A stretch of DNA of 64,000 nucleotides from Lytechinus pictus (lineage: Eukaryota), in assembly GCF_037042905.1 (NCBI RefSeq), contig NC_087247.1, forward strand, positions 27,838,001 to 27,902,000. Direction: 5' to 3'. Below the pieces are notes generated by a model, which worked only from the letters and a program-made list of their open reading frames with translations, did no database searches and was not told the origin of the DNA. The position numbers were made by a program, and so were the translations under genes. Below are positions 4,201 to 57,080 of the stretch, in pieces; position 1 is the first letter of the stretch, and the number at the start of each line of letters is the position of its first letter.

Positions 4201-7200
4201 GCACCTGACTGGATCCGACACTGTATTTTACATGTTTGACATAAAATGCTCAGGTCATCTTTATATATCTTCTTAATACCTAGTTCCCACTGTCAAAGTT
4301 TGCGCCACGATTAAAATGGTGGTTTCAATTGTGGAAGTAATTGAAGTGATCGCACCAGATCAATCATGGCAATCTTATTGATTGTAGAAAATGTATCAAC
4401 GGTTCAGCAATTTTTTGTGATCACCTACGATAGGCCAATCGTGGGGATAGTACAGTGGGACAAAGTATTAGTCCCTCTTACCTTGCATTTCTTCAGCCGT
4501 TTTGTCATTTTCCACCTGCTTGGCCTGCCCCTTGGTGATTACCCATAATGCCCCTTTTGCTGCGTCTGATACGTTTGATTCCGGGGATTGCGTGAGCGAC
4601 TCCAGGAGCTTCACACATTCTCCGTTCTCAACAATCTTCTGACGGCCTTCATCCGAGAAGGCCAGATTCCATATAGTATTGGCAGCAGCTTCTTGGGTGT
4701 CCGTGCTCCTGTCCTTTAGCATCTTGACCAACAGAGGGAGCCCTCCAGCTTCTAGAATCTGTTGATTAAATTGGAATTTTTTTTTACATTCTCTTAATCA
4801 ATCTCATGGGCCAAGTTTGTCTAATAGGACTACTACGGGACCAAACTATGATAATTACAATGTTGATGGTGTGAAGATTTATATTACGGGACTTTAATTT
4901 CAATTTCAATTTCATTTCAATTTCCAATATCAGTTTCAGTTCCAATTTCAATTCCAATCTTAAAGTTGACATAAGAAGGAAATAAATATCCTGGAATATG
5001 GTATGTAAGGAAAGCATATTACATATATAATCTGTTTATCCACATATAATACCATAAAAGTCGTCTGGCACCTTGGTATCCTCCACTAAAATGCCTCCAA
5101 AATAGCATCTCTAACGAGCCAGGAAACTTCTCACGATTTCCACCTCAGTCTATGTGACGTCACGTCATGCCTGCCCTCTCATTATGTTCCCCGGATGTTC
5201 CACATAAAATCATACACAGAGCTCCAGAAAATGTTTTCCTTTTTTTTTCAAAAGTTAAAAACTCAGCTAAATAATGGTTGTGTACATATTCCTTTGCCTT
5301 ATATATATCGCTGATATAATAAATAATAATTATCGGGCTTACGATTTCGAAATATTTGCGGAAACATTCTTTTATGTCACATTTTCTTCACTCATTTTTA
5401 TTTTTTTGTGTGTTGAAATCTTTGAACGTTCGTGTGCCGAAGACCGGCCTGACTTTGAAAGTAGATCCGGTCGATTGCTTTCCCCCGCCCCCAAGCTCTA
5501 CGTACACGTGCGGTGTTTGTTTACATTTGTTTCGACTCTCGCTTTCTGCTTTATACTGGATCACGCGCTAGAATGGAACAGAACGATCTTTTTATGGATT
5601 TTGAGGACTTTCAAGAGGAAGGTGAAGAGGAAAGTGATGAAGAGAGCTACGAGGACGACGGTAGTTGGGAGGACGCGTCAACGAGTGAGGAAGGAGAAGA
5701 CGATGGAGAAATCGGAGAAGAGGGAGTCGTTGACGATGACTATAACGCTCCTATGCCAGCCGCAGCCACCGAGGCCAGCGCCAGGGGAACGGCCCGCCTA
5801 GGAGCCGAGGGAGCACCCGATGTTCCGCAACCGTATCTCCATGAACCACCACCGAGACAAGATGACGATGATGGCCTTTTTAACGACGGAGATGCTCCCC
5901 GGGATGTCGATCCTCATCGGTTAATGAATAATGATTGGTTAGTTATTGTCTAATTATCTGACTTAGCTTAGAGACTCCATTCATTTACTAATAATACCAC
6001 GTTTCTTAGTTGCTTGCCTTTGTGACTTAGTCACTGTCACTTGTCAATTTGACGGACAGTGTCAGTGTCTCTCAGGCTCAGCTAGCTCAGTTCGTTCAGT
6101 CGGGATTGAAATATCATTAGATCTTATTCGTTAGTGGCTACAATTTTTTCTGTCATTGTGTGTATTTGAGTTTTGTCAGACGTGTATCAATCAGATATGA
6201 TTATTTACGTCTGGGACCGACCTTTAACGTCACCATCCGAAAGATGGTGACGTAACCAGTAATTTTAATTTGAATGTAAAAGAAAATAAAAACGATAAGG
6301 TTATATCACCGAGCAAACGCTTTTATGGAATTTAAAAAAAATAATTCACCCAACAAGTCCGAAGCTGAGCTGAGTGAGACTTCAGTACCGGTAGTAGCCC
6401 AACACTATTCAGCACCTGCGAACAATTTTATTGCCACGTTTTTCTTTAAAATTTATCTTACATGAAGGATGGTAGAAAATTGACTAGTGTATGCATTGAA
6501 TACATTTAGGAGGTACAAACATGATGTAATAAGTATCGCATGAGGTCTGCTTTATATTATTATTAGCTCTAATATGTCAAGTCTCTTGCAAATATACAAT
6601 TGACCCCCCCCCATGGAATGGAGAGCACCACTACAGCACTAGTTTTGTGTTAAAATTTGATCCAGATGAGGTGTTGTCCACAAACAGCGTATCTTCATCT
6701 ACACGTACCCACTGCCAGGATTTTTCAAGGGGGGGGGGCACATTTCCCCAAAAAAAATTGACAAACAAAATGAAAAAAAAAATACTCGCTTTCAAAGGGA
6801 GGGGGCACGAGTCAGATGTGCCCCCCCCCCCCCCCTCCCTCTGGATGTGCCAGTGCCCACTGCACATAATTTGCATCTTTTCCCCAAAATATCTCATAGA
6901 CTTACATTGCATTAAAATCCGCAGGCAAGAGGAGTCTAAAAAAGATGATTAATACTGATGTTTCTTCTTTTTTTACTTTTAGGTGTCTATGTGGTGGCCA
7001 CTGCAGGGTGGAACCTTCATTCTCTGCAGGTGACAGCACATGTTGCAGGGAGATTCCTGAAGTTTCATTTGAAACGGACGCTTTAGGCGTAGACTGTCTC
7101 ACTACAACAGAGGCGTTTGAGTCAGCCATCCTGAACCCAATATCTTTATATATTGGATGGATGGAGTACACGGACAGGTGGAGGCGAGCAGCCAGGGCCT

Positions 7201-10200
7201 TTGGTAACCGAAACAATGAGTAAGTATCATGGTCATTGACATGGACTTTACCTCCTTACTAGATAATGTATAGCCTTCAACAGTAATCAGAAAAATTTTG
7301 TTCTTGATTAATATATTTTCTGTGCATTAGTTTTCAAAGAGGCAGGGTAAAATGAAATTATTTGGGGTTATGCAATGTTTGACATATTAACCAGGAAATT
7401 AGTGTAATTATTTTTGTGTCTAAGCTGGATATTTGTTTTTTTTTTCAATTTGAAAGAAAGTTTTTAAAATAGGAAGACTTTTTTAAGCAGGCACTTTATC
7501 AGGTACATGTAGTGTCATGCTCTTCATGTATTTTTATTTACATGTATGGACCTGACCAAGCATGGTAAATTGACAATGTCTCTTACATGTACATGTTTTT
7601 TTTCTGATGGTGTTACAGTAATAAAAACTTGGGGTTTATATCATTCTTGCGGCAAACAAAAAATTGAAGGGAATTTCAAACCATTGCATACATGTATTTC
7701 TGGTTTTAGTATTTTAATTTAAGTCTCTCTTTACATTAATCTTCTGTATTTTTATTTTGCAGGAAATACAGATATGTGGCTTATAGAAAAGTTGTCCGCT
7801 GGTGTTGGGGTTTTCTCGGCAAAGACATAAGGGTGCAACTACCTGCCTGCATACACTCAAAAATCATGCGAGCCTATCCTGATGGTGCTGGAATTTACAA
7901 GGGGACAGTTCTGCGAGTATTGAGAAGATAAATGACTTATGTATATATATATCATAATTTTGTTTTGGCAGTTTTTTGCTACGTTTCAGCACTCAAAATG
8001 CAAAGCTCTGTACATTGATCAGTATTTGAAGATGCCATCCATTAAATTTTAAATGTTTGAAAGTGTACTTACATGAACCTTATATATGTACCTTCACTCA
8101 CATGTAGTTATCTTCTGATTTTGATGTTACTTACATCAGTGTGCATGTCTCTCTATACTGTATAATATAATGAGTTAAATTGACTGTATAGATGCATTGT
8201 TCATTCTGCATGTAGAACTGGTTTCTACTTACTAAATTTGTTATTTGTTTAAGTGGATTTGGAATTCAGAGTTTTCAAGACATGTTCGGACCTTAGGGGT
8301 TACATTATTTGATATGTCATATTATCAAGTACAGTTCATTATTTTCCTTGTTTTGATTATTATCATTAGCATTAGGCCTACATGTATGATTTATCTTTAT
8401 AGGAAAACATTTACATGTCTCATCTATTGGAAATCAAAATGTAAATGGTTTGCAGGTGAAAAAATCCTGCATTTGATGGTTTTTAATAATTATTTTTTAG
8501 AATTATATATAGTAACAATTGTAAATATAATAAGGATACATTGTACAGGTGAAGTTACTTGTCGAATGGTCATTCTGTATTGACGTACATGTAGCTGTGC
8601 AGATATTGATTTTTAGTCCATTATCTGTTTCAAAATATTGAGTTATATATGTTTAATTCCTGTATGGAAAGCAATGTTTTTGTGTTGCATCTTAATACCA
8701 TGAGAAAGTGATAACATACATTTATTCCCATCTCAGAGTGTAATTCAGAGTAAAATTGTTTTTAAAGAAGTTTCATTAGACAAAAACATTAGTTAATGGG
8801 TTTATGGACTTGCACAATGTATTCTAACTTCGTCATCTTCATCAGTTTGTTATTGCTTAGCTGTTTGGGTGCCTGGTAAATAATGTAATGTCTTTTCTTC
8901 CTGTTGCAGATATTGATAAATGAAGTCATTTAATTGTTTAAAAGGCCATATATCTTTTACAACTGTACTTGTATTTTGAATTCAAAATAATTTGAAATGT
9001 ATTGGATCGAACTATCTTGGTATATGCCTTCTGTGATTGTAATATTGAACTATGGTCCATGTATATTTTGCTTTATTTTGATGGTGTTTTTTTTTTATTT
9101 GCGTCTAGTCAAAGTCATTTGGGAATTACATGTAGATATGTATTTTCTTGCTTTTTCCAAGGCCCTTCTACTTGGAAATCAAGTAATGAAGATGAGTTAG
9201 TTTGCCTTTTGTAATGTACATGTAGATGATAATTCTGAAGAAACAAATAGACTTATTAGGAATTTTGAAATTTCCTGTCTGAATTTTTTTTCTTTTGATG
9301 AATGATGCTTAAATGATTGTTGATGTAAATTACAGGGCAATTCTATAAAATATGTGCGTCCGAACCCCTATATTTGGGACCTTCCTGAAATTTTCTGTCT
9401 CTGATTTTTGGTTCTTTTGACAGTCTGAAATGCTGTCAAATGACCATGACTTGGCCAATTTATCAAGTGAAGACTAGAAAAATTAGGTCGGATTTTCAAA
9501 AAGGTTTATCATTTTATGGAATTGCCCTACATATTTATGTGTGCTTTATGAAAGGGATCACAATGTTCAAGACTTTCTTGGGAAGCATAGAACCCCATTT
9601 CTAGCTTTCACACTGAATTGGACTGCACATTCAATATGAAAATTAAGTTTTCTTTCGTACTCATTTTCCTTTCACAAGGAATATTCAGTTTCAGTAGCAA
9701 GTACATGTACAAACCAGAAATTTAATTTCATTATTCAAACATCCCTAGGAAGTCTTGAGCATTCTATGACTGTTCTAATAGAGGAATAGATACGGTAATT
9801 GTGTTTTATAAGATGATGATTTGAGGGAAGTGGTGATGTGCTGCACTGCTGATGCTGCTATTATGAGTGTTGATACAGAGGAAAAGTGAGCAATAGATAA
9901 CGGTGGCTGTGATGAAAATGAAGACGACCAAGCATGAGAAGTGAACATGTCAAATATAAGATGCAGTGGATCCTATTAAGTTACTGCTGGTAGCAGAACA
10001 CACACTTTTTTTAAAACTCCAGAGCAACAGAGCTTGTCATTGGGACACTTACATATTGTGAAGTGACATTGGAGGATTTTGTGCTAACTTTTTGTGAATT
10101 TTTTGGAAATTTTTGTTGAAAAATGTAAATTTTCAAAAATTTAGGGAGACCCCCCCCCCCCCCTGCTGTGTATGGGCATTGGTACCAAGGTACTTAAAAA

Positions 10201-13200: not shown

Positions 13201-16200
13201 CCAACAATAGGTAGGAATCACAGGGTGCCACAGGTACTTGTTTGAGAGCTTTCCTTCCAGGAATAGATAGGTTAATGTTCACAATGTCATCTCTACTCCT
13301 TTGAAAATCGACGATGTACCTGTAACTGATCAATGGCCTCTGCTTTACTTGGACGATCAACTCCTGAGCACAATGGTGGCTTTCCCTCCAGTTCTGGGAT
13401 GGTAGACCGGATCTTTTGTTTTCCAGACACTAGTTGCATTGTCTCTTCCATGAGTGTTCTCACATAATCTATGAAAAAAAATATATCAATTTCAAATGTA
13501 TTTAGTATCTAAAAGTCACAAGAAAAAAAAAAAAAAAAAATCAAAATTACATGTAAGTAAAGAAAAATAAGCAAGAAGCACTTGCTTCTCTTCTATTATA
13601 TGCAATGTGAAAATGAAACAAATACAGAAAATACAAAACCTTGTGAAAATCTGCTTAATAATAAAAAAATAAAAAAATCTTATAATCGCATTACATTGCC
13701 ACCATGACATGCACTGGCATATCATTCAGGAGGCAAATGAATAAACACACGCATGGCAAGTATTTCTAACAATGCAGATCTCTATGTGAACTGTCTTTAG
13801 GATACTTCTTCATAATTTATTGATTTTATTACCTTACAAAATATCAATCACCTAGAGTACAGACGACAAAATTCATAAGTACATACACATTAACATAAGA
13901 CCCCCTATTTTCTAACAATTATTTTACAGGGGAAGGGAGGTTGAAATATACTCACTGAATGTGCAAGCTGTCAACACTTTGGAAACTGTGTGGCCGCCTT
14001 CTTTGGCTTTGGGGTAATTGATACGGTACATAGGTGTCCCATCTGCCTTAGTTGCATGACTTCGACCAGCATTCTCATTCCAGTGCAAGGCGGCAAGATG
14101 TAATCTACAAATAATCAGAGTACAAAGAAAAAAATAAAATAATAACTGTAATCGATTTTAGTACAAGATGTTCTCTACCACGATATCACTATTGGGCTTT
14201 ATACATGTACAGTACATGTAGACATATCATGACTAATATGTAAAAACTTTAATCTATTTTATTAAAACTATGACAAAGCTTTTCTTCAAGAATATGATGA
14301 AGAATAATATAGAAATCTTTGTAATGAGGTTGAGGGCCATTTACTTTCAATCACCGCTTCGGTCAAGCACGTATTTCCACACTCATTCAACCCAAAAATC
14401 AACTACATAGACTTGCAATTTTTTTTACCTGCACTTCATCCCGGCATATGAGTAGGCCAGCATCTTAGGACACCAATAGAGCATCACACTATGAAAGGCC
14501 TCGACTGAACTGGTCTGGTCAACAGGAGACATTTTCTTCATGTCATTCAACAGTCTGGTTTTTGATAGTTCCTCAGACAACTTTTCAAACGGTTTCGTAC
14601 CTGTGAATTTAAAAAATAAAACAGGAGTTAGGCGAGGCGTCAAAACCCCAAATGCGTTCCAACGCGTGCATAGCCATTGTTCCATAATGAGAGTGTGCAA
14701 AGGAGTTCCAAGAGATTAGTACGAAGTACCGTTATATTCTACATTAAAGCTAATTTGCATAATCCGTACACGCTGGGGAACGGGGCAATTATTATCTCGA
14801 TCGCTATTGGCTAATCCGCCGGAGCGTCGCACGAGAATACACTGAATAGTGCAGGTTCACATACACACACACACACACAGCGCGCCAGCGTACACTTCAC
14901 ATAAATTGAGGTCAGTGTTCGGCGTGCACGTCGGATCAACATTTGCAGCGAAGCTTTGCAGCGCGTGAGGTGCGGGCGGATCTACGAGAGGGGGAATATA
15001 GGCGAGCGGCGAGAGGCCAAAATTTGGGACTTTAATCCCCCCGACTGGATCAAAGCAAAAACATGCATCATTTTGAAGGAAATTTTCAGAATTTTTTAGA
15101 ACTGAGAATTAAAAGTGTCGCACAGTGTAGCTTCACCATGGAAACCAGCCTTGAATAGGCCACGCCCATTTTTGTGATAAATGCAAAGCAGTAACTTATC
15201 ATTTATATTTGTTAATTAATTACACTAATTTATATATGAATATAGACTTTACGAGGATAAAATCACTACAGATTGAATGATATGATAACGGCTAGCAACC
15301 AAATATATATTTCATCTATATTTGATTTCAAAACTGTTGCCTAGCAACATTTTTTCCCTAGCAACCATATTCATTTTTCAATATTCTCTTATTTTTTGAC
15401 CAGATTAATTCATTTTATCATTTTTTTTTAGTTTTTAATTTGTAAAAACTAATGAAGAAGGTGAATTTTGATGAAAAAGGGATAAAAGAGGATAACTAGG
15501 ATGTATAATGCATTAATGATCATGAAAAATTACATTATTGCCATGTTTGATTAACCCCTGCATGTGACGGATATCACTAATATGTTTGTGTGTATTTACG
15601 ACTATATCGGCATCATTTTATGGATTTTATAATATTGTTATAAATCATTCTTAGATACCCTGCTGTGTCACGTTATCTGTTCTAATCTAAATAATAGAGT
15701 ACTTCATAGATTTTTCCGTTACCTATGGAAACCATTGTGTTGCCTAGCAACAGCATTTTCTCTAGCAACCATCACTTTTTGGTGATATTTCAAGCCTGTA
15801 ACCTCCCAAAAAATTCCCTTTTTTGTCCTCAAAATGCATCTTATATTATTCTAAGCATTTATGACAATTAGTTTCACCCATCTGGTCAGGCAGTCGGCAT
15901 ATTGAGAGAGGGCATGGCTGTATGCAGACATTTTTTTCCTTGGGGTGGCAAAACGATTAAAAAAATTCCAAGAAACAAAGCGAGGGAGCGAAGCTACTGA
16001 GTTTGGCAAGGGGCGCTTTTTCAGTAAATTGAAGGATATCTTGCACACTTTTGGTGAATTTTGTGAAAATTTTCAGTTTAAAAATGTAACCTTTCACAGC
16101 ATACGGCAATGGGAGAGGAAATGGGTAGTTTGTTATTTGGAACTTTTTATCGTACATGTTAGGAAGGGAAATACATATCCAAGACCATTCAATAAGTTTT

Positions 16201-25200: not shown

Positions 25201-28200
25201 AGTCACAAACATCTCAGAATAGTTTGCGATCTATCAGGACATGTTTTAAAATTGATTTTAGGTATCAACAAGTTAAAATATATTTGATATACCTTTCGTT
25301 GTGATCCCTTGTTCTCCGTTAAGAAATATTAAATACGTCTTTTCTCGACGATGTTGGAAACGTAAATAAAACAGAATAGAAGTCACAAACATCTCAGATG
25401 GGTGTGCGATCTATCACAACATGTTTTAAAGCTGTTTTTAGGGGTCAACAAGTTAAAATAGATTTGATATACCTTCCATTATTATCCCCTGTTCTCCGTA
25501 AAGAAATATTAAAGATGCATTTTCTCGACAAAGTTGGAAACGTCGATAAAACAAAATAGAAGTTGGTAGCATCTCATATTTATTGGTGATACATATTTTT
25601 CGAGGGGTCAACAAGTTAAAATATATTTGATATACCTTTCGTTGTGATCCCTTGTTCTCCGTTAAGAAATATTAAATACGTCTTTTCTCGACGATGTTGG
25701 AAACGTAAATAAAACAGAATAGAAGTCACAAACATCTCAGATGGGTGTGCGATCTATCACAACATGTTTTAAAGCTGTTTTTAGGGGTCAACAAGTTAAA
25801 ATAGATTTGATATACCTTCCGTTATTATCCCCTGTTCTCCGTAAAGAAATATTAAAGATGCATTTTCTCGACAAAGTTGGAAACGTCGATAAAACAAAAT
25901 CGAAGTTGGTAGCATCTCATATTTATTGGTGATACATATTTTTCGAGGGGTCAACAAGTTAAAATATATTTGATATACCTTTCGTTTTGATCCCTTGTTG
26001 TCCGTTAAAAATATCAAATACGTCTTTTCTCGACGATGTTGGAAACGTAGATAAAACAAAATAGAAGTCACAAACATCTCAGATGGGTGTGCGATCTATC
26101 AGGACATGTTTTAAAATTGTTTTTAGGTGTCAACAAGTTAAAATAGATTTGATATACCTTTCGTTATGATCCCTTGTTCTCCGTTAAGAAATATTAAATA
26201 CGTCTTTTCTCGACGATGTTGGAAACGTAGATAAAACAAAATAGAAGTCACAAACATCTCAAATTGGTGTGCGATCATTCAGGACATGTTTTAAAATTGT
26301 TTTTAGGTGTCAACAAGTTAAATTATATTTGATATACCTTTCGTTGTGATCCCTTGTTCTCCGTTAAGAGATATTAAATGCGTCTTTTCTCGACGATGTT
26401 GGAAACGTAGATGAAACAAAATAGAAGCCACAAACATCTCAGATGGGTGTGCGATCTATCAGGACATGTTTTAAAATTGTTTTTAGGTGTCAACAAGTTA
26501 AATTATATTTGATATACCTTTCGTTGTGATCCCTTGTTCTCCGTTAAGAGATATTAAATGCGTCTTTTCTCGACGATGTTGGAAACGTAGATAAAACAAA
26601 ATAGAAGTCACAAACATCTCAGATGGGTGTGCGATCTATCAGGACATGTTTTAAAATTGTTTTTAGGGGTCAACAAGTTAAAATAGAGTTGATATACCTT
26701 TCGTTATGATCCCCTGTTATCCGTTAAGAAATATTAAAGATGCATTTTCTCGACAAAGTTGGAAACGTAGATAAAACAAAATAAAAGTCACAAACATCTC
26801 AGATGGGTGTGCGATCTATCAGGACATGTTTTAAAATTGTTTTTAGGTGTCAACAAGTTAAATTATATTTGATATACCTTTCGTTGTGATCCCTTGTTCT
26901 CCGTTAAGAGATATTAAATGCGTCTTTTCTTGACGATGTTGGAAACGTAAATAAAACAGAATAGAAGTAAAAAACATCTCAAATTGGTGTGCGATCATTC
27001 AGGACATGTTTTAAAATTGTTTTTAGGTGTCAACAAGTTAAATTATATTTGATATACCTTTCGTTGTGATCCCTTGTTCTCCGTTAAGAGATATTAAATG
27101 CGTCTTTTCTCGACGATGTTGGAAACGTAGATGAAACAAAATAGAAGCCACAAACATCTCAGATGGGTGTGCGATCTATCAGGACATGTTTTAAAATTGT
27201 TTTTAGGTGTCAACAAGTTAAATTATATTTGATATACCTTTCGTTGTGATCCCTTGTTCTCCGTTAAGAGATATTAAATGCGTCTTTTCTCGACGATGTT
27301 GGAAACGTAGATAAAACAAAATAGAAGTCACAAACATCTCAGATGGGTGTGCGATCTATCAGGACATGTTTTAAAATTGTTTTTAGGGGTCAACAAGTTA
27401 AAATAGAGTTGATATACCTTTCGTTATGATCCCCTGTTATCCGTTAAGAAATATTAAAGATGCATTTTCTCGACAAAGTTGGAAACGTAGATAAAACAAA
27501 ATAAAAGTCACAAACATCTCAGATGGGTGTGCGATCTATCAGGACATGTTTTAAAATTGTTTTTAGGTGTCAACAAGTTAAATTATATTTGATATACCTT
27601 TCGTTGTGATCCCTTGTTCTCCGTTAAGAGATATTAAATGCGTCTTTTCTTGACGATGTTGGAAACGTAAATAAAACAGAATAGAAGTAAAAAACATCTC
27701 AAATTGGTGTGCGATCATTCAGGACATGTTTTAAAATTGTTTTTAGGTGTCAACAAGTTAAATTATATTTGATATACCTTTCGTTGTGATCCCTTGTTCT
27801 CCGTTAAGAGATATTAAATGCGTCTTTTCTCGACGATGTTGGAAACGTAGATGAAACAAAATAGAAGTCACAAACATCTTAGATGGGTGTGCGATCTATC
27901 AGGACATGTTTTAAAATTGTTTTTAGGTGTCAACAAGTTAAATTATATTTGATATACCTTTCGTTGTGATCCCTTGTTCTCCGTTAAGAGATATTAAATG
28001 CGTCTTTTCTCGACGATGTTGGAAACGTAGATAAAACAAAATAGAAGTCACAAACATCTCAGATGGGTGTGCGATCTATCAGGACATGTTTTAAAATTGT
28101 TTTTAGGGGTCAACAAGTTAAAATAGAGTTGATATACCTTTCGTTATGATCCCCTGTTATCCGTTAAGAAATATTAAAGATGCATTTTCTCGACAAAGTT

Positions 28201-31200
28201 GGAAACGTAGATAAAACAAAATAAAAGTCACAAACATCTCAGATGGGTGTGCGATCTATCAGGACATGTTTTAAAATTGTTTTTAGGTGTCAACAAGTTA
28301 AATTATATTTGATATACCTTTCGTTGTGATCCCTTGTTCTCCGTTAAGAGATATTAAATGCGTCTTTTCTTGACGATGTTGGAAACGTAAATAAAACAGA
28401 ATAGAAGTAAAAAACATCTCAGATGGGTGTGCGATCTATCAGGACATGTTTTAAAAATTGTTTTTAGGGGTCAACAAGACACAATAGATTTGATATGCCT
28501 TTCGTTATGATCCCTTAATTGTTCTCCGTTAAGAAATATTAAAGATGCATTTTCTCGACAAGTTGGAAACGTAGATAAGACAAAATAGAAGTCAGTTGGT
28601 AGCCTTTCATATTTGCGATCTATCAGGACATCTTTTAAGATTGTTTGAAGGTGTCAACAGGTTAAAATATATTATATATGCATTTCGTTACGATACCTTG
28701 TTTTCCGTAGAGCATAGGCGGTTCGGGGCGCGAGGGACTCCCCCCCCCCCCCCCCCCCCCCCCCTTGGACGAGCAAAAAAGATAGAAAAAAGGGAAAAGA
28801 GGAGGGAAAAGAGAGGAGTAAAAAGAAGAGGAAGATGAGGGAAAGACTTGGGGGGAAAAAATCTTTCATGTCACTCTATACAATTTTCGCTCGTGCTTCG
28901 CCCTCGCATTGCCTGTTAGGTGATTTTCATATCTTGTTCAATGAGTTTAGATATCAAGTTTGAAAGTTAATTTACAAAACACATTTCACCTCGGAAATTT
29001 AACTTCATTATTTTGTGTGATTTACAAATTGATTTTTAAAAAGTGCTCTGTAAACATGTCAGTTTTATGGTCTGAATATTAATATTTTCTGTTCGTGCTG
29101 CGCACTCGCGAATTTTGATTGGTACCTATTATTCTCGTGCATTCCATAAATTTTCAAAATATCCCTTTTTGGGTCTGTGTGTGCTATCGCGCCTTAGCTA
29201 GCGCTGCACGCTTGCATTTTGATTGGCGAGTTATGTATGTCTCAATATTGATTATACAACAAACTACTTGAAATCCCCTTTTCATTCATGACAGTTTATC
29301 AAAAAAATTGGCTCACGGTTTGCGTTCGCATTAATGGTTAAATATATTAACTTGATGCATCATATTTATAGTTACAAAGGTGCTTGAAATGTCCAGATTT
29401 CAGGCCATAATATCATCAGATTTCGCGCCCTCATTATGCATTCATGAATATTTAAGATATTTCGGGTGATTTCATGCAACTGTCTAGAGTGGGCCATAAT
29501 GTGCCTGCACTGTACATCTATAGGTCCTTGGTTGAAGTCAACGATCCTATATAGCTATAACGACCCCTTGAACCTGAATTGGGTCAATTACGCCGTCTAG
29601 CACGTTTTGAGAACAATGGATGAAGGTGTGAAAATCACAAAGCAGCTAACAAAAGGGAAAATCCGTTTCAATTGACGTTATGCTATAGATTGCGTATAGC
29701 GGTTTGAATGTGAAACCCTGAACATGCTGAATGCCTACTACTGTGTACTAGTAGGTCCATGGTTATAGACTCTATTATAGTTGCGTGCATGTCTTCTCCA
29801 AGCCGATTCATAGCTTGTCGATGGCTTTAATGCACGTAAAATACAAATATACATGTAACTCTAGGTCCCATTATAGGGCATTTTTAACGGAATCGCCGAT
29901 GAGATAATTTTGACAAAACAAAAATGAATCACACTAATTATGCAGCAGCTATGTTTCTAAACATTACATGATCAAAGAAAAGACACGGGATGATATTTAT
30001 TAAATTTGTTAATGGCGGCTGGTCTTTATGATAAAAACATAGGTCTATTTTATCTTTAAGACATGAGAAAACAAATAAATCAATTATATAATTAATGTGT
30101 GTGTTTTACTTTTTACAAACGTGTATCAATCGAACATGCTTGACTTGCACGTAATTAATTTCCTCGTAATTTTTCTCTTATGGCTCGACTGTATTGATCT
30201 TTTATTTTCACTTTGCCGATACCATAATACGAGTAACGACTCGTGAAACGGAAATGTGTAGATTATCTATTATCTAAAAGTCAGATCCGACTTGAAGAGA
30301 AGTGATTATCACATAAAGGGTCGTAATCAGTCATGCATTAAAGTTTTATATCTACCGGTATTAGAAATATGTATTTGTACCCGACTTTGTTACATTTCTC
30401 TTAATGCTGGCTTCCAATCGTAAAATTGTGAGTGGAATTGTTTTGCACAAGTCCGGCTGCCTCCGACTGCACAAGCTTTGACCCCCGTTGACTACCTGTA
30501 GATCCACGGCCAACCGTCGCGACGCGTCGTCTCGACTCTACTGGGTATTGGAGAAGTACCAGGCCAGGGTCGAGTCACTTATACAAGAGCAAGTTCTGCA
30601 TTTGCCGGACTTTTGAAGAGCCTCTATTTTGAGGCTCGGGTTGTGGAGTATGGATTTTTCGTTTATTTGGTTCTCTGGTTATTTTATAATTTTTTTCTTT
30701 TACGGGCATTATAACTATTCCCTTCTACTACCACAGTGCGCCCCCACAAAAAAAACTATACACTTTTGAAATGGCTGCCAAATAAAAAATATATCACTTT
30801 GGGGGGAAAGACTTGCATGTTATGGAAGCCATTAAAATCAACTTTCATATGACACCAAAAAGTTGAAATACTATCACGATTGAGCGAACACTGCCTACTG
30901 AAACAAATGGTATGATAATTATGCTGGGCTGGAATTAGCCTTCCATTTTTTGTCAGTTTTTGAGGGGCAAATCCAGATATTACGGGCAAATCATTTGGCT
31001 TTGGAACTTGCAATGTTAAGGGCGTTGTGATAAATTATTGATCAACCAGTTATGAATGTTTAAGCAAGTTTCATGAATTATTAAATTGAACAAAAATTAC
31101 ACATAAATTACACAAAATTACACATCTTGGGCAACATTTCAACATTATCATGTGGCTCTCAGCAATGTGTTCATTGGAGTCAGGAAAATAGGGGGTGAGA

Positions 31201-34200: not shown

Positions 34201-37200
34201 CCTGTAGACGTTGTGCGCAGTCGCCGCGGTTGATCGAACGCTTTGACGGATCGCATTTTACTTCCGCTGGTAGCCAAAACAAAATTTATTTCCCTTTCCA
34301 TCTTTGTCAGGAATTTACGGGAATTATATACATATTTTTGGAAGCTCACATCATCAGGTACTAATACCTTGGTCACATTTGCTCTAGGGCGGCCGTACGG
34401 CGAGTCGAATGCAGCCATTTTATTCATTTTTATACAAACCACATTATGTAGCTCGTACATAAAATGTTAAAACGGCTGTTATTGACTCGCCGTACGGCCG
34501 CCGTATAGCAAATGTGACGAAGGTGTAAGCATGAATAAGCGATTCGCCGGAGCAAAATTTTTGCGTCCAGGTTCTTGTCCCTTTGAATACTTGTCACGCC
34601 TTCCAACCAATTAATTACGGCACACATCGTCATTCATTATACTAGTAGTTGCACCCTCACAACATTTCACGGCAAACAATTGAGGTAAGGAACTTCTCTA
34701 CACGCGCCAATAAATTCCTCTAGGCTTGCCAGCCCAATGCCCGGGAACAATAGAAGTGCCAGAACGCGACTGCACGGGCTCGTTATGTCACTCCGCGATG
34801 ATCGCAAGGGTGCTCTATTGATATGCAAATTCAACCTCATTAACTTCGTGGCGTGCAAGCCCGTGCATGAAAAGTAATGAGGGCGTGCAAACGCGTTTGC
34901 ACACCCCTCCCGGATATTGACGTCCCGCCTTAAACTTAAATGTAAAATATTCTCATTGCTTCCTGTACTTCTTTGATCCAATGTAGTATGTACTATTTTG
35001 TAATTATCAAAATGAAAAGGATTAGATAAATAACTTACACATGGTGTATATCTATAAAAGTCTGCATACCCATCACAGTCATCATTTGTTGTGCCATCAC
35101 CCTTTTTCGTCATGACACGATTAAGACACAATCTACAGTATCTTGTTTTTTTATGTGAATTCGCATAGCTAAATAAATTGACATTTGATATTGACTCGCT
35201 TCTCAGGTCGTGATACATGCATGTTCTCTTATCACAGTCAATTCAAATCTCACTCTGCACACCATATGTACCATAAATCAGCATTGGATGTACATGTAGG
35301 CAAGTTTAAGTTCATACATTATTCCTTTCACACTGAATTTAGGGAGACCAAAGTTAAGACACATTCTCCTGCCTAAAAATTGTGACAACCTGACTACTTG
35401 CACATCAAAGCTGAATTATCAAAATTGGTAGGGCATCATTAAATTGTTAAAATCGCCCCTGCAAATTTTACTGGCAAGTAATCGTTTGTTTTAGCAATCA
35501 AGCAGTTATCATTGTTTTGCATCCACTAATCTTCACTAAATATGTTACTTAACATGCAAAAAAACTGTCCTAGCAATACTAACCTTGCCTCATCCACTCT
35601 CTTTGTCCATGATTCTCTCCATGAGAGCATGCAGGATAGACGTCACTGTGGTTTTCATGTATGTTCCGCATGTGATTTAGGATAGACTTGAACTTGGCCA
35701 CCATGACCTCTCCATCACCATCTGGGGTTGATGAGGCGCACCAATAAACATGGTTGTTGATGGACCGCTTCCATCTGCCAACAACTTCACAATCTTTCAG
35801 CTTGGACACTGCGATGATCTTTTTCTTCAGACCTAAGATGATAATTCAACCAAGTTTCTTATTCAATATATCTATGCATGTCAATAAGAAATGATCTCTA
35901 CACAAGGGACTGTTACTATCAGAGCAAACATGAAAGAAAACCTTACTTTCAGAGGATACAATTTCTCATTGATGGGCATATGGTGACCAAGCCCCCCCCC
36001 CCCCCCCATCATGTTCTGAAAATAAAGGGGAAAATGGAGGAAGGACCTGGAATTATTCTTAATTCAACATAATGGACCGGACATTGTTCTCAATTCAACA
36101 TAATACATAACAAAACATAAAAACAAAGGATAATTATGAGAAATGAAAGTACTTCCTGCATACCTTTCGCAATATGCCACACATCATATCTATGATTGAT
36201 GTCAGGATAATTCTCTCGGAGCCATTTAGCCACTTGGAGGTGCCTATCTGTCACCAGCATACGTATATTGACCCCCTTCTCCTTCAGACTAGTGAGTCCC
36301 CTTGCCAGACCTTCCAACTCCATCGCATTGCTATTGCGAACTTCATTGCTCTGTAAGAAAATATAAGGATGCAACAACAATTTAAATACCAATTTAGGAA
36401 ATGTGATAGGAAAAAAAAATGGCAAATTGATTCCCTTTGCAATGAAAAATTCTGAGTAGAAGAAATACATTTTGAAAGAGTAATGTGGCTTAAAGTTATA
36501 AAAATAACTTTTTTTTCAAGCTATGCATACATATATCTATATAACAATGCATGCCAGTTTAATTTGATCTGTTCGATTCCCATAGCACTCACCCAAATAT
36601 TGATTATGAATTGTAAAAGAATTGTAAAAGAAAATTTCTTGCCATACCTGGACCAATTGCACATCCAAGATTTTGTTCCTCTTGAGATCCATCAAGGTGT
36701 ACGATCCATACTTTGCACAGTGGCCCGGAGAATCAGACCGCCCATCACCACCAAGGATGAGAGGCTCCCCTTCTGGAATTTCGTTGATCAGCTTCCTCTG
36801 CTCCTTCTTGGCTACTCTGATGACTGCTGGCTGAAGGTACTCTCGCTGGTGTTTCATGAATGTTTCCACTGTAATGGCCTTCACATTCATGTGTCGCAAG
36901 ACACGAAGCACTTTAGTGGGACTACTTCCTCCAAACAGAATAGCACCAGACAAAAGCATGTTGCCCGCGTAGATGTCACCAACCTTTGGCTGACTGAGCC
37001 ATTCCCGGCGAAGACCACAGTCTAGGCAGGTTGTCACAACTTTCAGTGCAGATCCTAAAGATTGTGAAGAAACTTTTTCCACATGCACATTCTTAGAAAG
37101 GCAAGAGATGCATACTTCAAAGAGCTCCATCAGGTTACTCTCAAACACGATAAACTTCTCCTGCATTAAAGGGCTCTTTGGTTCAGATCTGTAAAGAAGA

Positions 37201-40200
37201 CAAACAACAAATAGAAAATAAGAAGAAAGAATTCAGGATTACAAGTATTCCGAGGCATTACTGAAAAGAAAAATGACAAATACAGTTGAATTTGCATGTA
37301 CTGATCACAGGTAGTTGCATATTCACCATATATTATTTAGATCAGGTTTTATATTTATGTATTTTTGTGATGTCAAACAGCTTTGTATTTTACTAAAATT
37401 AATGAACAATGTCAAGAATAGGGTATTGTATATTTATGTCAAATGAATTTAATAGGATAAAACAAAATTTACCTTGACTGCCCTTCTTTGCGTGGTGAGT
37501 TGGTCTCTTCACCTGGAATATATGTGGGGTCCTTGGTCTCATCATCCACTGGTTCATCATCTGCTGGTTCATCATCCGTTGCTTCATCCTCGACATCATC
37601 CACTGCTTCTTTTTCAACATGTTGGTTGGCTGCTTTCAACACAAAAATTCCTTCAGTCTGTGTGACTGCATCACAAAGATCTGCTGCACGCTCTTTCGGA
37701 AAATTCACTTGCTTTCCTATCATGAAGAACATGAAAATGTAAAAGCAACATATTTCCTATTACACTACATGTAGGCTACTTTCCTATTTGGACTGTAAGA
37801 CTCAAGAATAAATTAGAACAGTAACTAAAAAAAAAAAAAAAAATCTAAATGAAAAACTGCAAAACAAAAACAAGAAATAAAACTAAACAAAAATCCTGGA
37901 GACCATAGAAATAATTTGTGGCTCAAACTGTTATCACATCTCTCGGGATCATTCAACAGATTTCTGTCTCAGTCAAATGGAAATTACATGTACCATCACT
38001 TAGGAATACGGAATGTACGTGTATAAACTTGACATTGAAGATTTTTATGTATCCTCCTTTAAAAAAAAGGGGGGGGGGTCATAATCTGGTAAAAAATTCC
38101 TGTATTATACATACAAGTAAATTTGTTCACATTGAATATTAGAGATAAGTCGACGTTATTATTACTGAAAATTTCAGGTTGTCAACACCCAAGCCTCCCA
38201 TGATCATGAACATTGGTGGTGCATGTATTATGCTCGATTAGAACGCATTCAAAATGATCCTCCATTTATCAAAATCACAAAGACTTGCTTTTATCATTTT
38301 CTCCACTTACCCTTTGACACAGTGATGGGCTTTACTTGCACTTTGCAGGTGCGCCTCTGTTTCCGAATGCCAACTCTCCGATGAACCATCTGAAAATTGA
38401 TTAGTTTATTAATGGTTACTCACAAGTATTTTGACTGAAGAGACACATGAATCACTTGGTAGTTGAAATAGAAACTAAAAAGTTGCAACTCCATGAACCT
38501 AAGGATGTAAATTAGTTAATGCTACTGAAATAAATGTGCATTTTGGATAAGTGATGGTTCTTGAGTTACTTTTGCTACACTACCAGGACTACATGTTGTA
38601 TGCATTCAAACTGTTATGAACATTCTGCTTCTGATCAAAACATCCATGATGGCCATTAACATGCAGAAAAAAATTTGTACATTTCCCTCCAATATCCATA
38701 AAACATTTGTGTCATGTACTGAACTTGTTTAATTTGCTTTAAAAAAAATCTGCCTATGGCATGAAATAGAAAAAAAAGTACTATCCTTGATAACACCCAT
38801 GACAATTATATACTGTACAAATACACTCTCCCCCATACACACACAGTGTATGGTTTACTTCAATTTTTAGAAAGTTGGAGGTGAAGAAATTTTTTCAAAA
38901 AACAAATCCAGTTTCATCAAAATAACCTGTGCAACAACAATACACCCAGGGTTGAGGGACATTGTGCCCCTCATATATTATCCAATTTGTCAAGAATAAT
39001 GAATAAATAAAACAAACAAGACAAACAAGCTGAAAATTTCATCAATATTAAGATGTAAAAAAAAAAGATGGTTGAATAATTACATGTACATTTTAAAAGT
39101 TCTGCTTATTTTTCACTTAAATGGTTATATGCATGCACAATTTAGTCACATGTAAGCAAATGAGAGAATCTACATGTACATGTATGATGTCCCTCAATAT
39201 TTCTTTTGTTCTTTGTTTGAATTACAGTACACAACATTTCTTTTTAAAACAGATTTGGCAATGAGGACCAGCTTGACTGAACCATAAAATGTTAAAACAA
39301 TGGCAATTCCATACGTTCAGGGAGAAAGAAAACTTTGTTTCACAGGACAATTGAGAAAATTAAAATATTTTGAATATTTATATAAAAGAAATAGTGAGTG
39401 ATGTCATCAGTTCCTTCACTTGCCTATTTTGTGACATTAGTTCTTTAAAATGTCATACATGAAAACTTTACATTCGATTTTGATGAAATTTTCAGTGTCA
39501 TGCTTGCTGGAATTTTCTCCTTTATTCAAATCAACTTTTTGTTGGAGTGGACTTGTCCTTTCATGTCATAGCATTATCGTTCAATAGTTCAATTTCACCT
39601 ACCTTCACCGAGCACTGGAAACCTTTACTACGCCCAAGAATATCTTTGGTACGTGCCGAGGCTCGTTCCTCATCATCTTTCCGTGTATACTCCTCGGTTA
39701 TCTCGACAACCTCCTACCAAATAAAGTAGAGAAGTAACTATGGTCATCATGATCTCATGAATATAATTTTGGTGGGGAAAACAAAATACGGTCATGACAA
39801 TGTAAAAAGCAGTACAAACAGAACCTATAAATACTGTACATTGAAGAGTATAGAGTTGGAGAACAGGAGAGAGAAAAGTCCTACGTATAAATCTGCTAAG
39901 ATTAAACATATACATTGATGTGTTATCAGAAACTAAAGGAAGTTAAGGAACACTTATTCAGGTCATCAAGTCAACATTGTGAATATACTGGTTATGCTCT
40001 CTCTGATCCCTCTTTTGCTTGGAGATCATGTAGTAAATTTTACATCTTACTCAAAATCAAGAAAATTAATATCATGTGTGCTACATGTAGAATGTGTAAC
40101 GACATCCAAAAGTTGCAGTTGGTGCAAGGGTGGGGGGGGGGGGCATGTTGTGCCTCCTATGATTTTTCTTATTGGAAAAAAAATTAATAAACAAGATGAA

Positions 40201-43200
40201 TTTGGAATGTGTATACAACGTCCCTATTATTCAATTGGGAAATATCGTCACCGGCATGGCATAAAAAAATATTTGACGACCCATCAGACCCAAGCACTGC
40301 TGTTCAGACCTGACCGAAATTGAATAAATTTGCTTTTCCTTTAGACCAAAGCAAGTTGTCAGAAGTAGAACACCAGCATTCAACATTTACCGATACACCA
40401 ATATGACTGAGTGTTGAGCTTCACACTCTATATATAGATATATATGAAGGCCTACATTACACATCCCCCCCCCCCCTCATATTGATGTTTCATTTAATGA
40501 GTCTAGATTTGGCTCTAGACATGTAAAATATCCATATTTGATTGTTGGAACTAACATTAGACACCCGTAATGATGAGAGGCAAGTCTAGATGTAGATCTA
40601 CTCTAGATTCTACTCTGAAAATTATTTTTGCCCAAATGACCTATCGTGACAAAAAAAATAATACACTGATTAGACTCCTATTAAGTCCTAACATGCCTTA
40701 TTAAATTCTAGATGATTTACTCACTTTCTTCCGGCTATATGAAGTTCGTTGTCGTTTCCTACGAACATCCTGAGAGGTCGGCGAAGTTGCAGTTCCAGCC
40801 ACTGGCTCCAGCGGTGCCGACACTGCGCTCACTGGAGTCTGAGAGTACTGAGAGTAGTCTTCACCATCATGTTCATGCTCAAGGCCAACAAATGTAGATG
40901 ATCTATCTGGGTCCTGATCATCCAATGATGATGAGGCAGACGGGACAACATTAGCGGAAGGACATGAAGGGCTAGCCAATGTTGAAGTACTAAAGTTAGA
41001 TCTCACTTTAGGAGATACATGTAGAAGGGTGCCATCACGGTGTCCATGTCCACTGCCACTGGCAGGGTCAGCAGTAGGATTGTAGATATGGGGAATGGCA
41101 TTTGCCAGCAGCTTCGGAGGCAATTTACGTAGTCCCAGTTCAAACATTTTGAGCTGTGTCTGATCATATTGTGATTGATCAAAATGCAGGCTACACACAT
41201 GAATATGTCTCACCCTTGAGTGGTCGAACACACGGTGTCTTTTGATAAAGTTGATCCATGCCATTTGGTAGGAGCTAAACCTACCGGTACCTCCAGGTCG
41301 AGGCATCGGCCCTGGCATCGTATGTACAGTAGTGGTTGCATAAGTCGACGAACAATGCATCACCATGCATCGATACCCTCCGGAATCCTTCTTTTTTGCC
41401 TTCCCCTTTTCTTCTTTCTCCAAACCTGACGGCCCATCACCATCCTTCATTACTAATCTCTACACAGACAAGCACTATAAAGCAGAAAATCAGACTATCA
41501 AAACAAAATTACCAAATTTCCGAGAGTATAAAATCCAAGCAGCAACGGAGTAACCGGGTCACTAGAGCATAACTTTAGCGGAGCGTGCAACTTACCAGCC
41601 CCACAGGCCAGGCGCCTCCAACCTTGTCGATTCCGCTCGCTTGTGTGCAATAGCCGCATCACTCGCGGATAGATATATCACAACAAATGTCGTCGGCTTG
41701 CATTTGACAGTCGAGAAATCGTGATTTAAACTTCCCTTTTAACTAATATCCTCACATTAAGTATTTCTTCGATGGGATGATTTAGGCTAAAAAACATAGT
41801 TGATTATGTGTATAGTCACAATTAAGTTTGAAATATCGACGATAGTTTAACACACTTCGTTCTATTTGCTCCAAGTTTCGCAAGTATGTTTGTTCATTAC
41901 AGTACAGTATACCCACACACCTTGCACCACTGTGGTTTCTCTTCCCCCCCAAAAAAAGTCTATTACATGATATAAAAATAATATTTTGGGTATTATAATG
42001 TTTTGTGTTGTTTATCTATTCAAAATGAATCGAAAGAAAACAACAAATTGACTCGTAATAACATCATAAGCTCTCAAACAACAATGTATCGGGAGTATAT
42101 CGACGAAGACTTTCCACACAACACAGGGCCCCACCACTTTGTCAAAACAAATAGTGCCATGACGTGACGTCACACAAAACGAACCGAATTCACGCCGTGA
42201 GAATTGGCGTCGATGACTTCCATATTTAGGTAGTTTTAATCGCTTATTTTTAATATTTTCAATTCGTTTTATTGTCTTAAATTAACTTATTGATATTAAG
42301 TAGGTTGAAAGCTTTCTAATGATGTAAAGATCTCTACTTTTGTGATCGTCTTCTTATATCAACTTTAATATTAATGTCAATCTAATTACAAAAAACGTTC
42401 TACATCATATGCACGTATATATTTGTATGTATCATAATATATATATATAAAAGAGGCAAAGAGGTAATGCATTATACTAGTTCCAACAGAGTTTACTTTC
42501 AAGTCCAAATTTTCGACGTAAATCCCACGTCTTCTTCAGGGTTACAATATTTTGTCACTGTGAGCTTTATTGTAACCCTGAAGAAGACGTGGGATTTACG
42601 TCGAAAATTTGGACTTGAAAATAAACTCTGTTGGAACTAGTATAATGCATTACCTTTTTGCCTCTTTTATCTCATCTATGTCCAACACGTGAAATGTAAT
42701 ATCGTTATATATATATTATTATATTTGCATATATTATAATTATCCATAAATTATCCAATTATCCATAATTTTTTTGAATGATTAAATGAATAGCCATTTA
42801 ATCAACATTACTTTTCCATACCAATGACAGTTTGGCCTATTATCAGTTTATTTCATCAAACAAACTTGTCTTAGGCTAAGAAGGTATTTTCTATTGGCAA
42901 ACAAGACTAACTAAAAATAAAGCGAAATTATATCATGTTTAGCAAAAATGGCTGTGAATGGGTAATAGGTGAATATCCTGTAGACATTAGAAAATGTGAT
43001 AATTTACCAAAATAGGTTGGGAATTACCGCCAAATATTTTTCAGTATTTTCGCATTAAGCACTGGAATAGATCAATCTGGTAGCATGATCTTCATGAAAT
43101 CCTCTCTAAAATGTTTTCTCAGATAGAATTCATTTGTAAATTCCTTTGAATGCCTCCAAGTTTCTTCACTCACAAACTTGCAATAACATTTTAAAAGATG

Positions 43201-53533: not shown

Positions 53534-53998
53534 GGGCTACACGGGCCTAATCACTAGTGGCAGGCCATAGATATTCATTCGAGCCAACCCATTGCCATTT
53601 TTTTTAATTTTGATATGGCTGATTGACAAAGTGTATGCATATGATTTTCCATCTAACACTGATTCTATTTTTGGTAATTACTGAACTTCCTTTTCCCAAA
53701 TTGGAAAGAAATATCACCAATTTTGGACTGTATTTTGACTGGCGGAAGGATTAGGGCTATTTTGCTGTTTGAGGTGATGAATCTGCTCCCCCCGACGCTG
53801 TCTTCAAACACGCCAATTTATTTTTAAAATGAGCCAGTCGAAGGACCCTTTTCTGGTCAGATATGGATTGCCAGATATATATCCTATCCACTGGTAGTAA
53901 ACATTCGACCCCCGAATTTCATCCTTATTTTTTATGAATTTTTTAAAGTGCCAATTTAACACACGAGTCTATGGGGAATGAATTAGGCCTGTGAGACC
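53534..53998. mobile_element. 465-bp MITE in the left foldback arm
   Basis: TCA TSD (53531-53533, 53999-54001); imperfect TIR ..CACGGGCCTAAT; absent from the right arm. Confidence 0.7.
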
Positions 53999-54001
53999 TC
54001 A

Positions 54002-55345: not shown

Positions 55346-56006
55346 TACAGACGTTTAGCGAAAAATGTCAAGGCTTATTAAGCTCCCCCCCTCCTCCTCG
55401 GGCTAGATAGGGTTAAGGGGGCTACGGCCTTCTCCACCATTAACCCCACTTATTTTTGTTTTGAAGCAAGATAATACGCGAAAAAGAGCATTGTGAAACA
55501 GAAATATAATTCGCACTGTATAGGCTTTTTAAGTGGTGTATAATGCAAATTAACTTTCAATACCCAAGAAATTTTCTCGCTTGGTCACTTGTTTCTATAG
55601 CTGTTATTCTGACTCTCTTTTGTTATCAACACTGGCGTACAGATGGAGAGGGGGATGGCTTTTGTGGGCTGGAGCCCTCATAAATTCCAACCATTTTTTT
55701 TTCAATTCCCTCGAAGTTATATACAAAAAATATGAATTTATATATATACACTACTCAAAAAAAGTTAAGGACCACTTTTTAAAACGTACATAAAGATTTT
55801 ATACAAGGTGTTTTATTCCTGGAAATACCTCAGTACAACTGTCCTAAATGTCCTTAAACACGCTGTAATCAATTTCACGCATGGGTGGTTTCAGTTGTTG
55901 CACAATGTCTCTCGCATCACTGCACATCCTGAAAAGTGGGCCCCGAGGGGTATCAGCTACCGACATGAAGTGGTAAAAACGAATGTCTGAGTGTCTTTCA
56001 GGCAGT

Positions 56007-57039: not shown

Positions 57040-57080
57040 TGCTGTTGTAGGCAAGTTGTTGATTGTACAGACTAAAGACG

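Follow-up and report, generated by a model that had tools for sequence, protein, structure and literature searches.

We analysed a 64,000-nucleotide stretch of the Lytechinus pictus genome (contig NC_087247.1, positions 27,838,001 to 27,902,000; this whole stretch is referred to below as the window, and coordinates are window positions unless another contig is named). Positions 4960 to 42368 of the window are occupied by a 37.4-kb Kolobok transposon, which lies in an intron of a host gene encoding a protein with ARM, TIR and SAM domains. The element is very likely a young, low-copy, structurally complete and transcribed autonomous member of the Kol0 lineage of Kolobok that has been enlarged by one nested insertion and is not maintained by the host. 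Its transposase open reading frame (ORF) and its termini are intact, it is transcribed, and more than one recent transposed copy is present in the genome; judged from these sequence features, the element is probably autonomous. The analysis documents a complete Kol0 Kolobok in an echinoderm, for which there are exact ends, a second copy, gene models matched both in RefSeq and in a spliced contig, and a nested insertion that has been dated. No new kind of system is called for.

Boundaries of the element and its copies in the genome

Kolobok elements are marked by duplication of the target site TTAA and by termini of the form 5'-RR...YY-3', the latter distinguishing them from piggyBac (PMC9587614). 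At the left end of the element, a TTAA (4960 to 4963) is followed by the terminal inverted repeat AGTTGACATAAGAAG (plus strand, 4964 to 4978), which begins with 5'-AG, i.e., RR. At the right end, the terminal inverted repeat CTTCTTATATCAACT (minus strand, 42350 to 42364; reverse complement, AGTTGATATAAGAAG) is followed by the second TTAA (42365 to 42368). The two repeats match at 14 of their 15 positions. A sister copy was found on contig C28 (C28:100463-124574, in the reverse orientation), and its alignment to the window starts exactly at 4960, with the left TTAA, and stops exactly at 42368. The sister copy has its own TTAA on both sides, flanks that are unrelated to the window locus and the same inverted repeats, including an identical left repeat and the same single mismatch. 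TTAA is therefore present at both ends of both copies, and the termini are 5'-AG...CT-3'. Because the second copy shares the exact ends and has its own TTAA and unrelated flanks, the boundaries are biological and not a product of chance, the element is shown to have been mobile, and the target-site duplication and 14/15 inverted repeats proposed for positions 4960 to 42368 in the first-pass annotation were borne out. The possibility that the sister copy is a haplotig of the window locus was ruled out by the same unrelated flanks and separate TTAA.

The element resembles piggyBac in being a cut-and-paste transposon with a TTAA-specific 4-bp duplication. The termini of piggyBac, however, are 5'-CCC...GGG-3' and its DDD transposase is different, whereas the element described here has AG...CT termini and a transposase core of the THAP/Kolobok type. 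Identity with piggyBac was ruled out by the AG...CT termini and by the finding that the only Pfam matches of the core were weak ones to Mutator/MULE.

A 17-nt motif, TGTGACGTCACGTCATG, is located at 5153 to 5169, 190 nt inside the left end, and has a perfect inverted partner at 42158 to 42174, 191 nt inside the right end. The motif contains the sequence TGACGTCA, which resembles a cAMP response element (CRE), and it sits upstream of both of the inward-reading genes described below. It could be a transposase-binding site or a promoter element shared by the two genes, and we regard it as a candidate for either role.

The number of copies was assessed by a genome-wide search of the 812-Mb assembly with one exon and both termini. 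Only two near-identical copies were found, those in the window and on contig C28; the first-pass annotation had named many such copies as a mark of an ordinary young insertion. The search also returned one right-end scrap of 175 bp. The same genome contains one older left-end copy (L043), which is 73 to 83% identical (17 to 27% diverged), and about 20 relatives resembling transposable elements of the miniature inverted-repeat type (MITEs), which have 60 to 210 bp of the termini in common at 72 to 85% identity. The older copy and the MITE-like relatives show that the lineage has persisted in the L. pictus genome. Convergent pairs of a related transposase and a P2RX7_C exon, 7 to 10 kb apart, were found at 11 or more other loci. 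Besides the nested block described below, the window copy has 574 bp and 97 bp that are extra relative to the copy on contig C28, and the latter carries a separate 7.7-kb insertion in intron 1 of its transposase gene. The basic length of the element is about 16.4 kb.

The transposase and KolX-like genes

The element carries two convergent genes with a total of 13 coding exons, all of which are open. This agrees with the claim, made from the sequence at the outset, that two spliced genes, one encoding an 877-amino-acid (aa) THAP-DDE transposase and the other a 256-aa KolX-like protein, can be reconstructed without stops. The transposase gene is on the minus strand and consists of 10 exons; all of its introns are of the GT-AG type, and the product is 877 aa up to the stop. 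Exon 1 (40725 to 41450) encodes a THAP zinc finger (C28..C33, C86-x2-H89 and AIPHIY), which was recognised by Pfam (THAP, PF05485; 32.3 bits against a cut-off of 23.9, E = 1.8e-7). Exons 2 (39603 to 39713) and 3 (38311 to 38389) are followed by an acidic linker in exon 4 (37473 to 37716). The first catalytic residue, D535, lies in exon 5 (36648 to 37188) within GGDGRSDSPGH, and the second, D602, lies in exon 6 (36164 to 36350) within LVTDRH; exon 6 also contains the D-x-x-H motif, DVWH, at residues 623 to 626. Exon 7 (35584 to 35832) contains an H2CH-type motif (NHMRNIHENH...PACSH), exon 8 (14429 to 14600) the third catalytic residue, E746, within SSVEAFHS, and exons 9 (13956 to 14104) and 10 (13293 to 13468, including the stop) complete the gene.

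An N-terminal THAP domain and an H2CH motif are usual in Kolobok transposases (PMC6004289). In Pfam, the core of the transposase gave only weak, subthreshold matches to Mutator/MULE, and no other transposase family was matched. The D/D/E, DxxH and H2CH blocks line up, one by one, with intron-less paralogues from the same genome and with Kolobok_1_AP_2p and other Kolobok transposases of Repbase that appear in the supplement of PMC9587614 (Data S5). The features found were thus D535, D602, DVWH, E746, the THAP domain and an H2CH-like stretch. The intron-less paralogues also align across the exon joins, including the join at the large intron 7. The same exon structure on contig C28 gives a protein of 876 aa that is letter-for-letter identical to RefSeq LOC129282034 (P0152), and this identity confirms the junction between exons 1 and 2. 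Intron 7 is 680 bp in the copy on contig C28 and about 21 kb in the window copy.

Outside L. pictus, the closest proteins are from L. variegatus (63 to 71% identical), Diadema (60 to 63%) and S. purpuratus (a fragment, 69%). A 358-aa protein from the moray eel Gymnothorax javanicus (P0159) is 69% identical to the urchin transposase over 359 aa, a value on a par with those of the nearest urchin relatives and above that of the L. pictus paralogues (~51%). Such similarity is a hint that this Kolobok lineage may have been transferred horizontally between marine animals. Of the 31-mers in the transposase exon region, 14 to 16% were also present in sequencing runs of a second species, as were 5% of those in the KolX region; judging from these shared 31-mers, a nearly identical element, or part of one, is probably present in another species.

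In the Kol0 lineage of Kolobok, the second protein is KolX, which has the fold of the P2X7 ballast (PMC9587614). The KolX-like gene of the window is on the plus strand and is predicted to comprise three exons encoding 256 aa, no other combination having splice sites nearly as good; the corresponding ORF of the sister copy is 257 aa. The predicted exon 1 (5573 to 5937) encodes an acidic N terminus (35% D+E) that ends in ...NNDW and has the donor GTTAGT. Exon 2 (6983 to 7219) encodes a cysteine-rich core, WCLCGGHC...TCCREI...DCLT, whose motifs agree, in the same order, with the KolX alignment of PMC9587614 (Fig. S6); exon 2 alone had no match in Pfam and nothing meaningful in the PDB. Exon 3 with the stop (7763 to 7931) reads YRKVVRWCWGFLGKDIRVQLPACIHSKIMRAYPDGAGIYKG and matched P2RX7_C in Pfam (PF20478; 25.8 bits against a cut-off of 23.5), and its best PDB match, a weak one (E = 0.86), was to residues 544 to 590 of P2X7. 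RNA-like runs contained 0.28 to 0.33 of the words of the KolX region, approximately the exon fraction, which fits the model but proves nothing. The element thus has a second gene of the KolX type, with P2RX7_C on exon 3, cysteine motifs in exon 2 and predicted splicing.

Like the C-terminal ballast of P2X7 and zebrafish Nanor, the KolX-like protein matches P2RX7_C and has the motif order CxC..C, CC, C(I/L)T, YR..W..LG and LP.C. It differs from them in being a stand-alone, transposon-encoded protein of 256 aa with an acidic N terminus and not the tail of a receptor, and in having the spacing CxCxxxC where they have CxCxxC. Codon 141 (7038 to 7040), which belongs to the CxCC motif in the ballast-like domain, is AGC (Ser) in the window copy and TGC (Cys) in both the copy on contig C28 and the older copy L043. 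Because both of the other copies have Cys, Ser141 is derived and private to the window copy. The idea that it represents the loss of a conserved zinc ligand was dropped, as Cys is found there in just half or so of the KolX proteins known.

Assignment to Kolobok with a DDE transposase and KolX, as originally proposed, accordingly holds on the basis of TTAA, the termini, THAP, the DDE blocks and P2RX7_C. The element is like members of the Kol0 lineage (Kolobok-1_XT type; Kapitonov & Jurka 2007; Kojima & Bao 2022, PMC9587614) in its TTAA, RR...YY termini and short inverted repeats, in its THAP and DDE transposase with DxxH and H2CH, and in having KolX as a second gene. It is unlike them in several respects. 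The host is an echinoderm, the hosts of Kol0 named in the text of PMC9587614 being vertebrates, annelids, cnidarians and sponges; its convergent genes are both rich in introns (10 and 3 exons); 190 nt in from each end there is a symmetric CRE-like box of 17 nt; and a nested transposon has brought the element to 37 kb.

From its family membership, a mode of action can be proposed. The 15-bp inverted repeats, the symmetric 17-nt subterminal boxes or both would be bound by the THAP domain and the core, the RNase-H-like core would cut out the element and paste it into TTAA, and KolX would act as an accessory factor. At this locus, the element, about 16.4 kb in its basic form, inserted at a TTAA in an intron of the conserved ARM-TIR-SAM gene, in the same orientation as the host gene, and a 20.3-kb member of a family with a TWA target later landed in intron 7 of the transposase gene.

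The host intron, the nested insertion and transcripts

The host gene is on the minus strand, as is the transposase gene. The host exon upstream of the invaded intron (minus strand, 43365 to 43498) ends in ...AVHDSNKCK, and the downstream exon (minus strand, 4482 to 4758) begins with ILEAGGLPLLVKML and matched Arm in Pfam (7.9e-13). When joined, the two exons read ...HDSNKCK followed by ILEAGGLPLLVKML, and the join lies within an Arm repeat. The intron, from 43364 to 4759, is 38,606 bp, of which the element makes up 96.9%, in agreement with the first estimate that it accounts for 97% of an intron splitting an ARM repeat. In another L. pictus annotation, a 583-aa ARM-TIR-SAM protein (P0264) aligns exon by exon and joins the same two host exons. 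The S. purpuratus orthologue of the host protein is 83% identical.

Much of the length of the element is due to a block of 20.3 kb (14631 to 34929) in intron 7 of the transposase gene. The block has a TTA duplication (14628 to 14630 and 34930 to 34932) and ends in the 13-bp inverted sequences GGCGAGGCGTCAA and GGCGGGACGTCAA. It is not present in the copy on contig C28, where the equivalent of window position 14630 is joined directly to that of 34930. Its content consists of frameshifted reverse transcriptase fragments of long interspersed elements (LINEs) and a 3.5-kb array of a 180-bp satellite (25187 to 28708). At 97 to 100% identity, both of the 300-bp ends of the block are present in at least 40 places in the genome; elsewhere, the distance between paired ends is 9 to 20 kb, and one further copy has the same length of 20.3 kb. 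Target sites were read from pattern matches, and among 15 copies with exact flanks the target was TTA in 12 and TAA in 3. A TWA target is typical of PIF/Harbinger elements, and the block shares with these the 3-bp TWA target duplication and short inverted repeats starting with GG. Unlike them, the window copy of the block yielded no DDE_4 or Myb-like ORF. No transposase was found when eight ORFs of the block were searched against Pfam, the best match being a weak one to GIY-YIG (E = 0.013) below the cut-off, and the block looks non-autonomous.

The block is a single insertion of a very young and abundant TWA-target (PIF/Harbinger-like) family, and the LINE scraps and satellite were the cargo of this one composite transposon and came in with it, recently. 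The element is large (37 kb) because another transposon recently entered one of its introns and not because the host preserved it. The first-pass annotation had described all 13 exons as remaining intact although the element had absorbed over 20 kb of nested, partly decayed insertions. The amount of foreign DNA was correct (20.3 kb), but it represents one insertion and two small indels (574 and 97 bp) and not a gradual accumulation. Since one composite transposon landed in one intron, the paradox of intact exons amid decay is dissolved. The alternative offered at the time, recent insertion of a preassembled cargo, was close to the truth in that the event was recent; the cargo, however, is that of a separate nested transposon and not part of the Kolobok.

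Four public runs were aligned to the stretch of contig C28 that is homologous to the transposase exons. A spliced contig of 2,537 nt, from a run guessed to be RNA, contained seven GT..AG joints that correspond exactly to exons 3 to 10, and its loose end corresponds to exon 2. The joint between 35584 and 14600, i.e., across intron 7, which had been singled out for checking, was among them. A few stranded raw RNA reads were also found, in the sense orientation, three of which cross the joint between exons 4 and 5. Of the four diagnostic coding sites, three (37574, 36739 and 36249) have window bases in the spliced contig; at the fourth (13976), a window base is suggested by one unlocated difference in the exon piece. 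At the diagnostic sites of the 3' untranslated region, the spliced contig carries window bases at five of five, with one private difference, and the raw RNA reads likewise show window-type bases. From the diagnostic sites on both sides of intron 7, therefore, a window-type allele is transcribed and spliced from 35584 to 14600.

The large intron raises the possibility that the window copy is intact by virtue of its youth alone and is now non-autonomous, the 21-kb intron 7 and the capture of exons by host splicing blocking production of the full-length transposase, with the transcripts coming from individuals or alleles that lack the nested insertion. In line with this, the RefSeq models for the window copy stop at exon 7, without E746, and the full 876-aa RefSeq protein exists only for the copy on contig C28, with its 680-bp intron 7. 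The nested family is also so young (its ends are 100% identical to those of other copies) that the insertion may be polymorphic. Set against these points are the window-copy alleles found on both sides of intron 7 in the spliced contig and the fact that the host gene itself splices a 38.6-kb intron at this locus; for animal genes, the splicing of a 21-kb intron is routine. We regard a non-autonomous window copy as improbable.

In RefSeq, isoforms X2 and X3 of LOC129282890 (712 and 616 aa; P0151 and P0001) run from host ARM exons in frame into transposase exons 2 to 7, using the acceptor of exon 2, and end by read-through immediately after 35584; they contain neither the THAP domain nor E746. 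The phase is 0 at both the host donor (43365) and the acceptor of transposase exon 2 (39713), and the host and transposase genes run in the same direction, so that gene-trap transcripts are plausible. The chimeras may be real gene-trap transcripts or may be an artefact of annotation. The expectation that automated annotation would split the element into several unrelated genes was right in that the element is mis-modelled, but RefSeq, instead of splitting it, fuses host ARM exons to transposase exons 2 to 7 and truncates the model at the large intron. This calls for caution in the use of such annotations, as the model made from a 37-kb intronic element joins an immune-type ARM-TIR gene in frame to a transposase.

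It could be argued that this fusion is itself the relevant product of the locus, a nascent captured transposase without THAP that arose by gene trapping of the ARM exons onto exon 2. X2 and X3 are exactly such chimeras, and the matching phases and shared orientation would permit them. A fusion that has neither the DNA-binding THAP domain nor the catalytic E, and that ends by intron read-through, nevertheless looks like a by-product of splicing, and in the other L. pictus annotation the intron is spanned by a model of the normal ARM-TIR-SAM protein of 583 aa. We find this explanation scarcely credible. A combination of the two ideas, in which an active, autonomous two-copy Kolobok acts as a natural gene trap at this locus while its own mRNA is still assembled across the 21-kb intron, is doubtful but deserves more serious consideration. 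If true, it would offer a live snapshot of the first step in host-transposase fusion and a candidate source of the first experimentally tractable Kolobok transposition system. To our knowledge, transposition of a Kolobok element is yet to be demonstrated by experiment, and a test of this kind needs intact copies that are expressed and nearly identical.

Divergence, domestication and neighbouring repeats

The copies in the window and on contig C28 differ by 0.6% substitutions, and the exons are intact because the copy is this young. Differences were found at 82 of 12,964 non-coding positions (0.63%), at 6 of the 2,631 positions of the transposase coding sequence (CDS) (0.23%; 2 synonymous and 4 non-synonymous) and at 4 of 771 positions of the KolX CDS (0.52%; all non-synonymous, 0 synonymous). 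Only 2 of the 37 indels between the copies are in CDS, both of them 3 nt. The ratio of non-synonymous to synonymous rates (dN/dS) of the transposase is 0.57 but is based on six changes only and is indistinguishable from 1, and KolX looks neutral. Both copies carry private non-synonymous changes. We read the pair as probable recent descendants of a lineage selected for a working transposase, with private changes acquired since then; the divergence data are not evidence of the host protecting the window copy.

Purifying selection by the host, which would keep the transposase and KolX of this copy or of the family open for a host function, had been put forward in the first-pass annotation as one explanation for the intact exons. 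Such domestication has a precedent in Xenopus, where Kolobok transposases have been domesticated repeatedly, sometimes with their DDE motifs kept (PMC6004289). It would also fit the very low copy number (two), the transcription and correct splicing of the gene, and the excess of non-coding over coding change, there being too few non-synonymous substitutions and indels in the transposase CDS. Against it, the inverted repeats and TTAA duplications are perfectly kept in both copies, which lie at unrelated sites. A dN/dS of 0.57 on six changes cannot be separated from 1, KolX has four non-synonymous and no synonymous changes, and the window copy has a derived Cys-to-Ser change in the cysteine-rich motif of KolX. 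The nearest annotated protein of the congener L. variegatus is only 63 to 71% identical, and no conserved orthologue is annotated there. The argument from intact exons amid decay has gone, as the nested DNA is one recent insertion. The second transposed copy, the private non-synonymous changes and the distance to the congener protein all argue against domestication. Purifying selection on the window copy is thus not supported, and we rate domestication of the copy or the family as very improbable, slightly more so than loss of autonomy through intron 7. Of the marks of a domesticated gene, neither loss of the termini, nor a dN/dS well below 1, nor, judged on annotated proteins, a single syntenic orthologue across species was found.

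The XKol genes of Xenopus (Hikosaka et al. 2018, PMC6004289) are likewise Kolobok THAP-DDE-H2CH transposases, some of them low copy and expressed, and they raise the same question of activity versus domestication, which was likewise approached by copy number, synteny and dN/dS. Synteny between species is seen for the domesticated XKol genes, which no longer have a transposon context. The L. pictus copies, unlike the XKol genes, have kept their inverted repeats and duplications, lie at unrelated loci and have no close annotated orthologue in the congener.

Several observations weigh against the conclusion that the element is a young, autonomous transposon that the host does not maintain. The mobility of the element is read from the sequence of its transposed copies, and a copy number of two is unusual for a family that is actively amplifying. 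A further check proposed at the outset, for an empty TTAA site in other haplotypes, had a negative result: when both host flanks were searched genome-wide, no empty-site haplotig was found in the assembly, and apart from the window locus itself the flanks matched only old repeats of no relation to it. The element is expressed at a low level (16 and 5 reads per ~8 million each). That the spliced contig comes from an RNA run is only a guess, supported by the joints and by the three raw reads across a junction, and the source animal may or may not carry the nested 20-kb insertion. The KolX model rests on splice-site quality, motifs and the share of k-mers and not on aligned reads. Finally, the transposase has 4 non-synonymous changes where 12.9 would be expected from the non-coding rate (P = 0.004), so that constraint at the level of the host is possible.

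The remainder of the window contains further repeats. The left flank of the element (4844 to 4959) is an old repeat. About 80 bp outside the right end, a MITE consisting of a 103-nt hairpin with 98% complementarity lies at 42447 to 42670 and belongs to a large family with hundreds of matches at 76 to 96% identity. At 55746 to 58295, two Tc1/mariner-like copies are arranged head to head, forming a 2.5-kb palindrome of 55% G+C in which each transposase ORF is frameshifted; a 98.6%-identical copy of this Tc1/mariner-like element is found at C28:146347-147670. Tandem arrays with a unit of about 181 bp are located at 53987 to 55089 and 61700 to 63140, and each unit contains one long open frame (NTIGRLLLKYILGVCRGVSLLSICKEKQRASALV...), with arrays on both strands.

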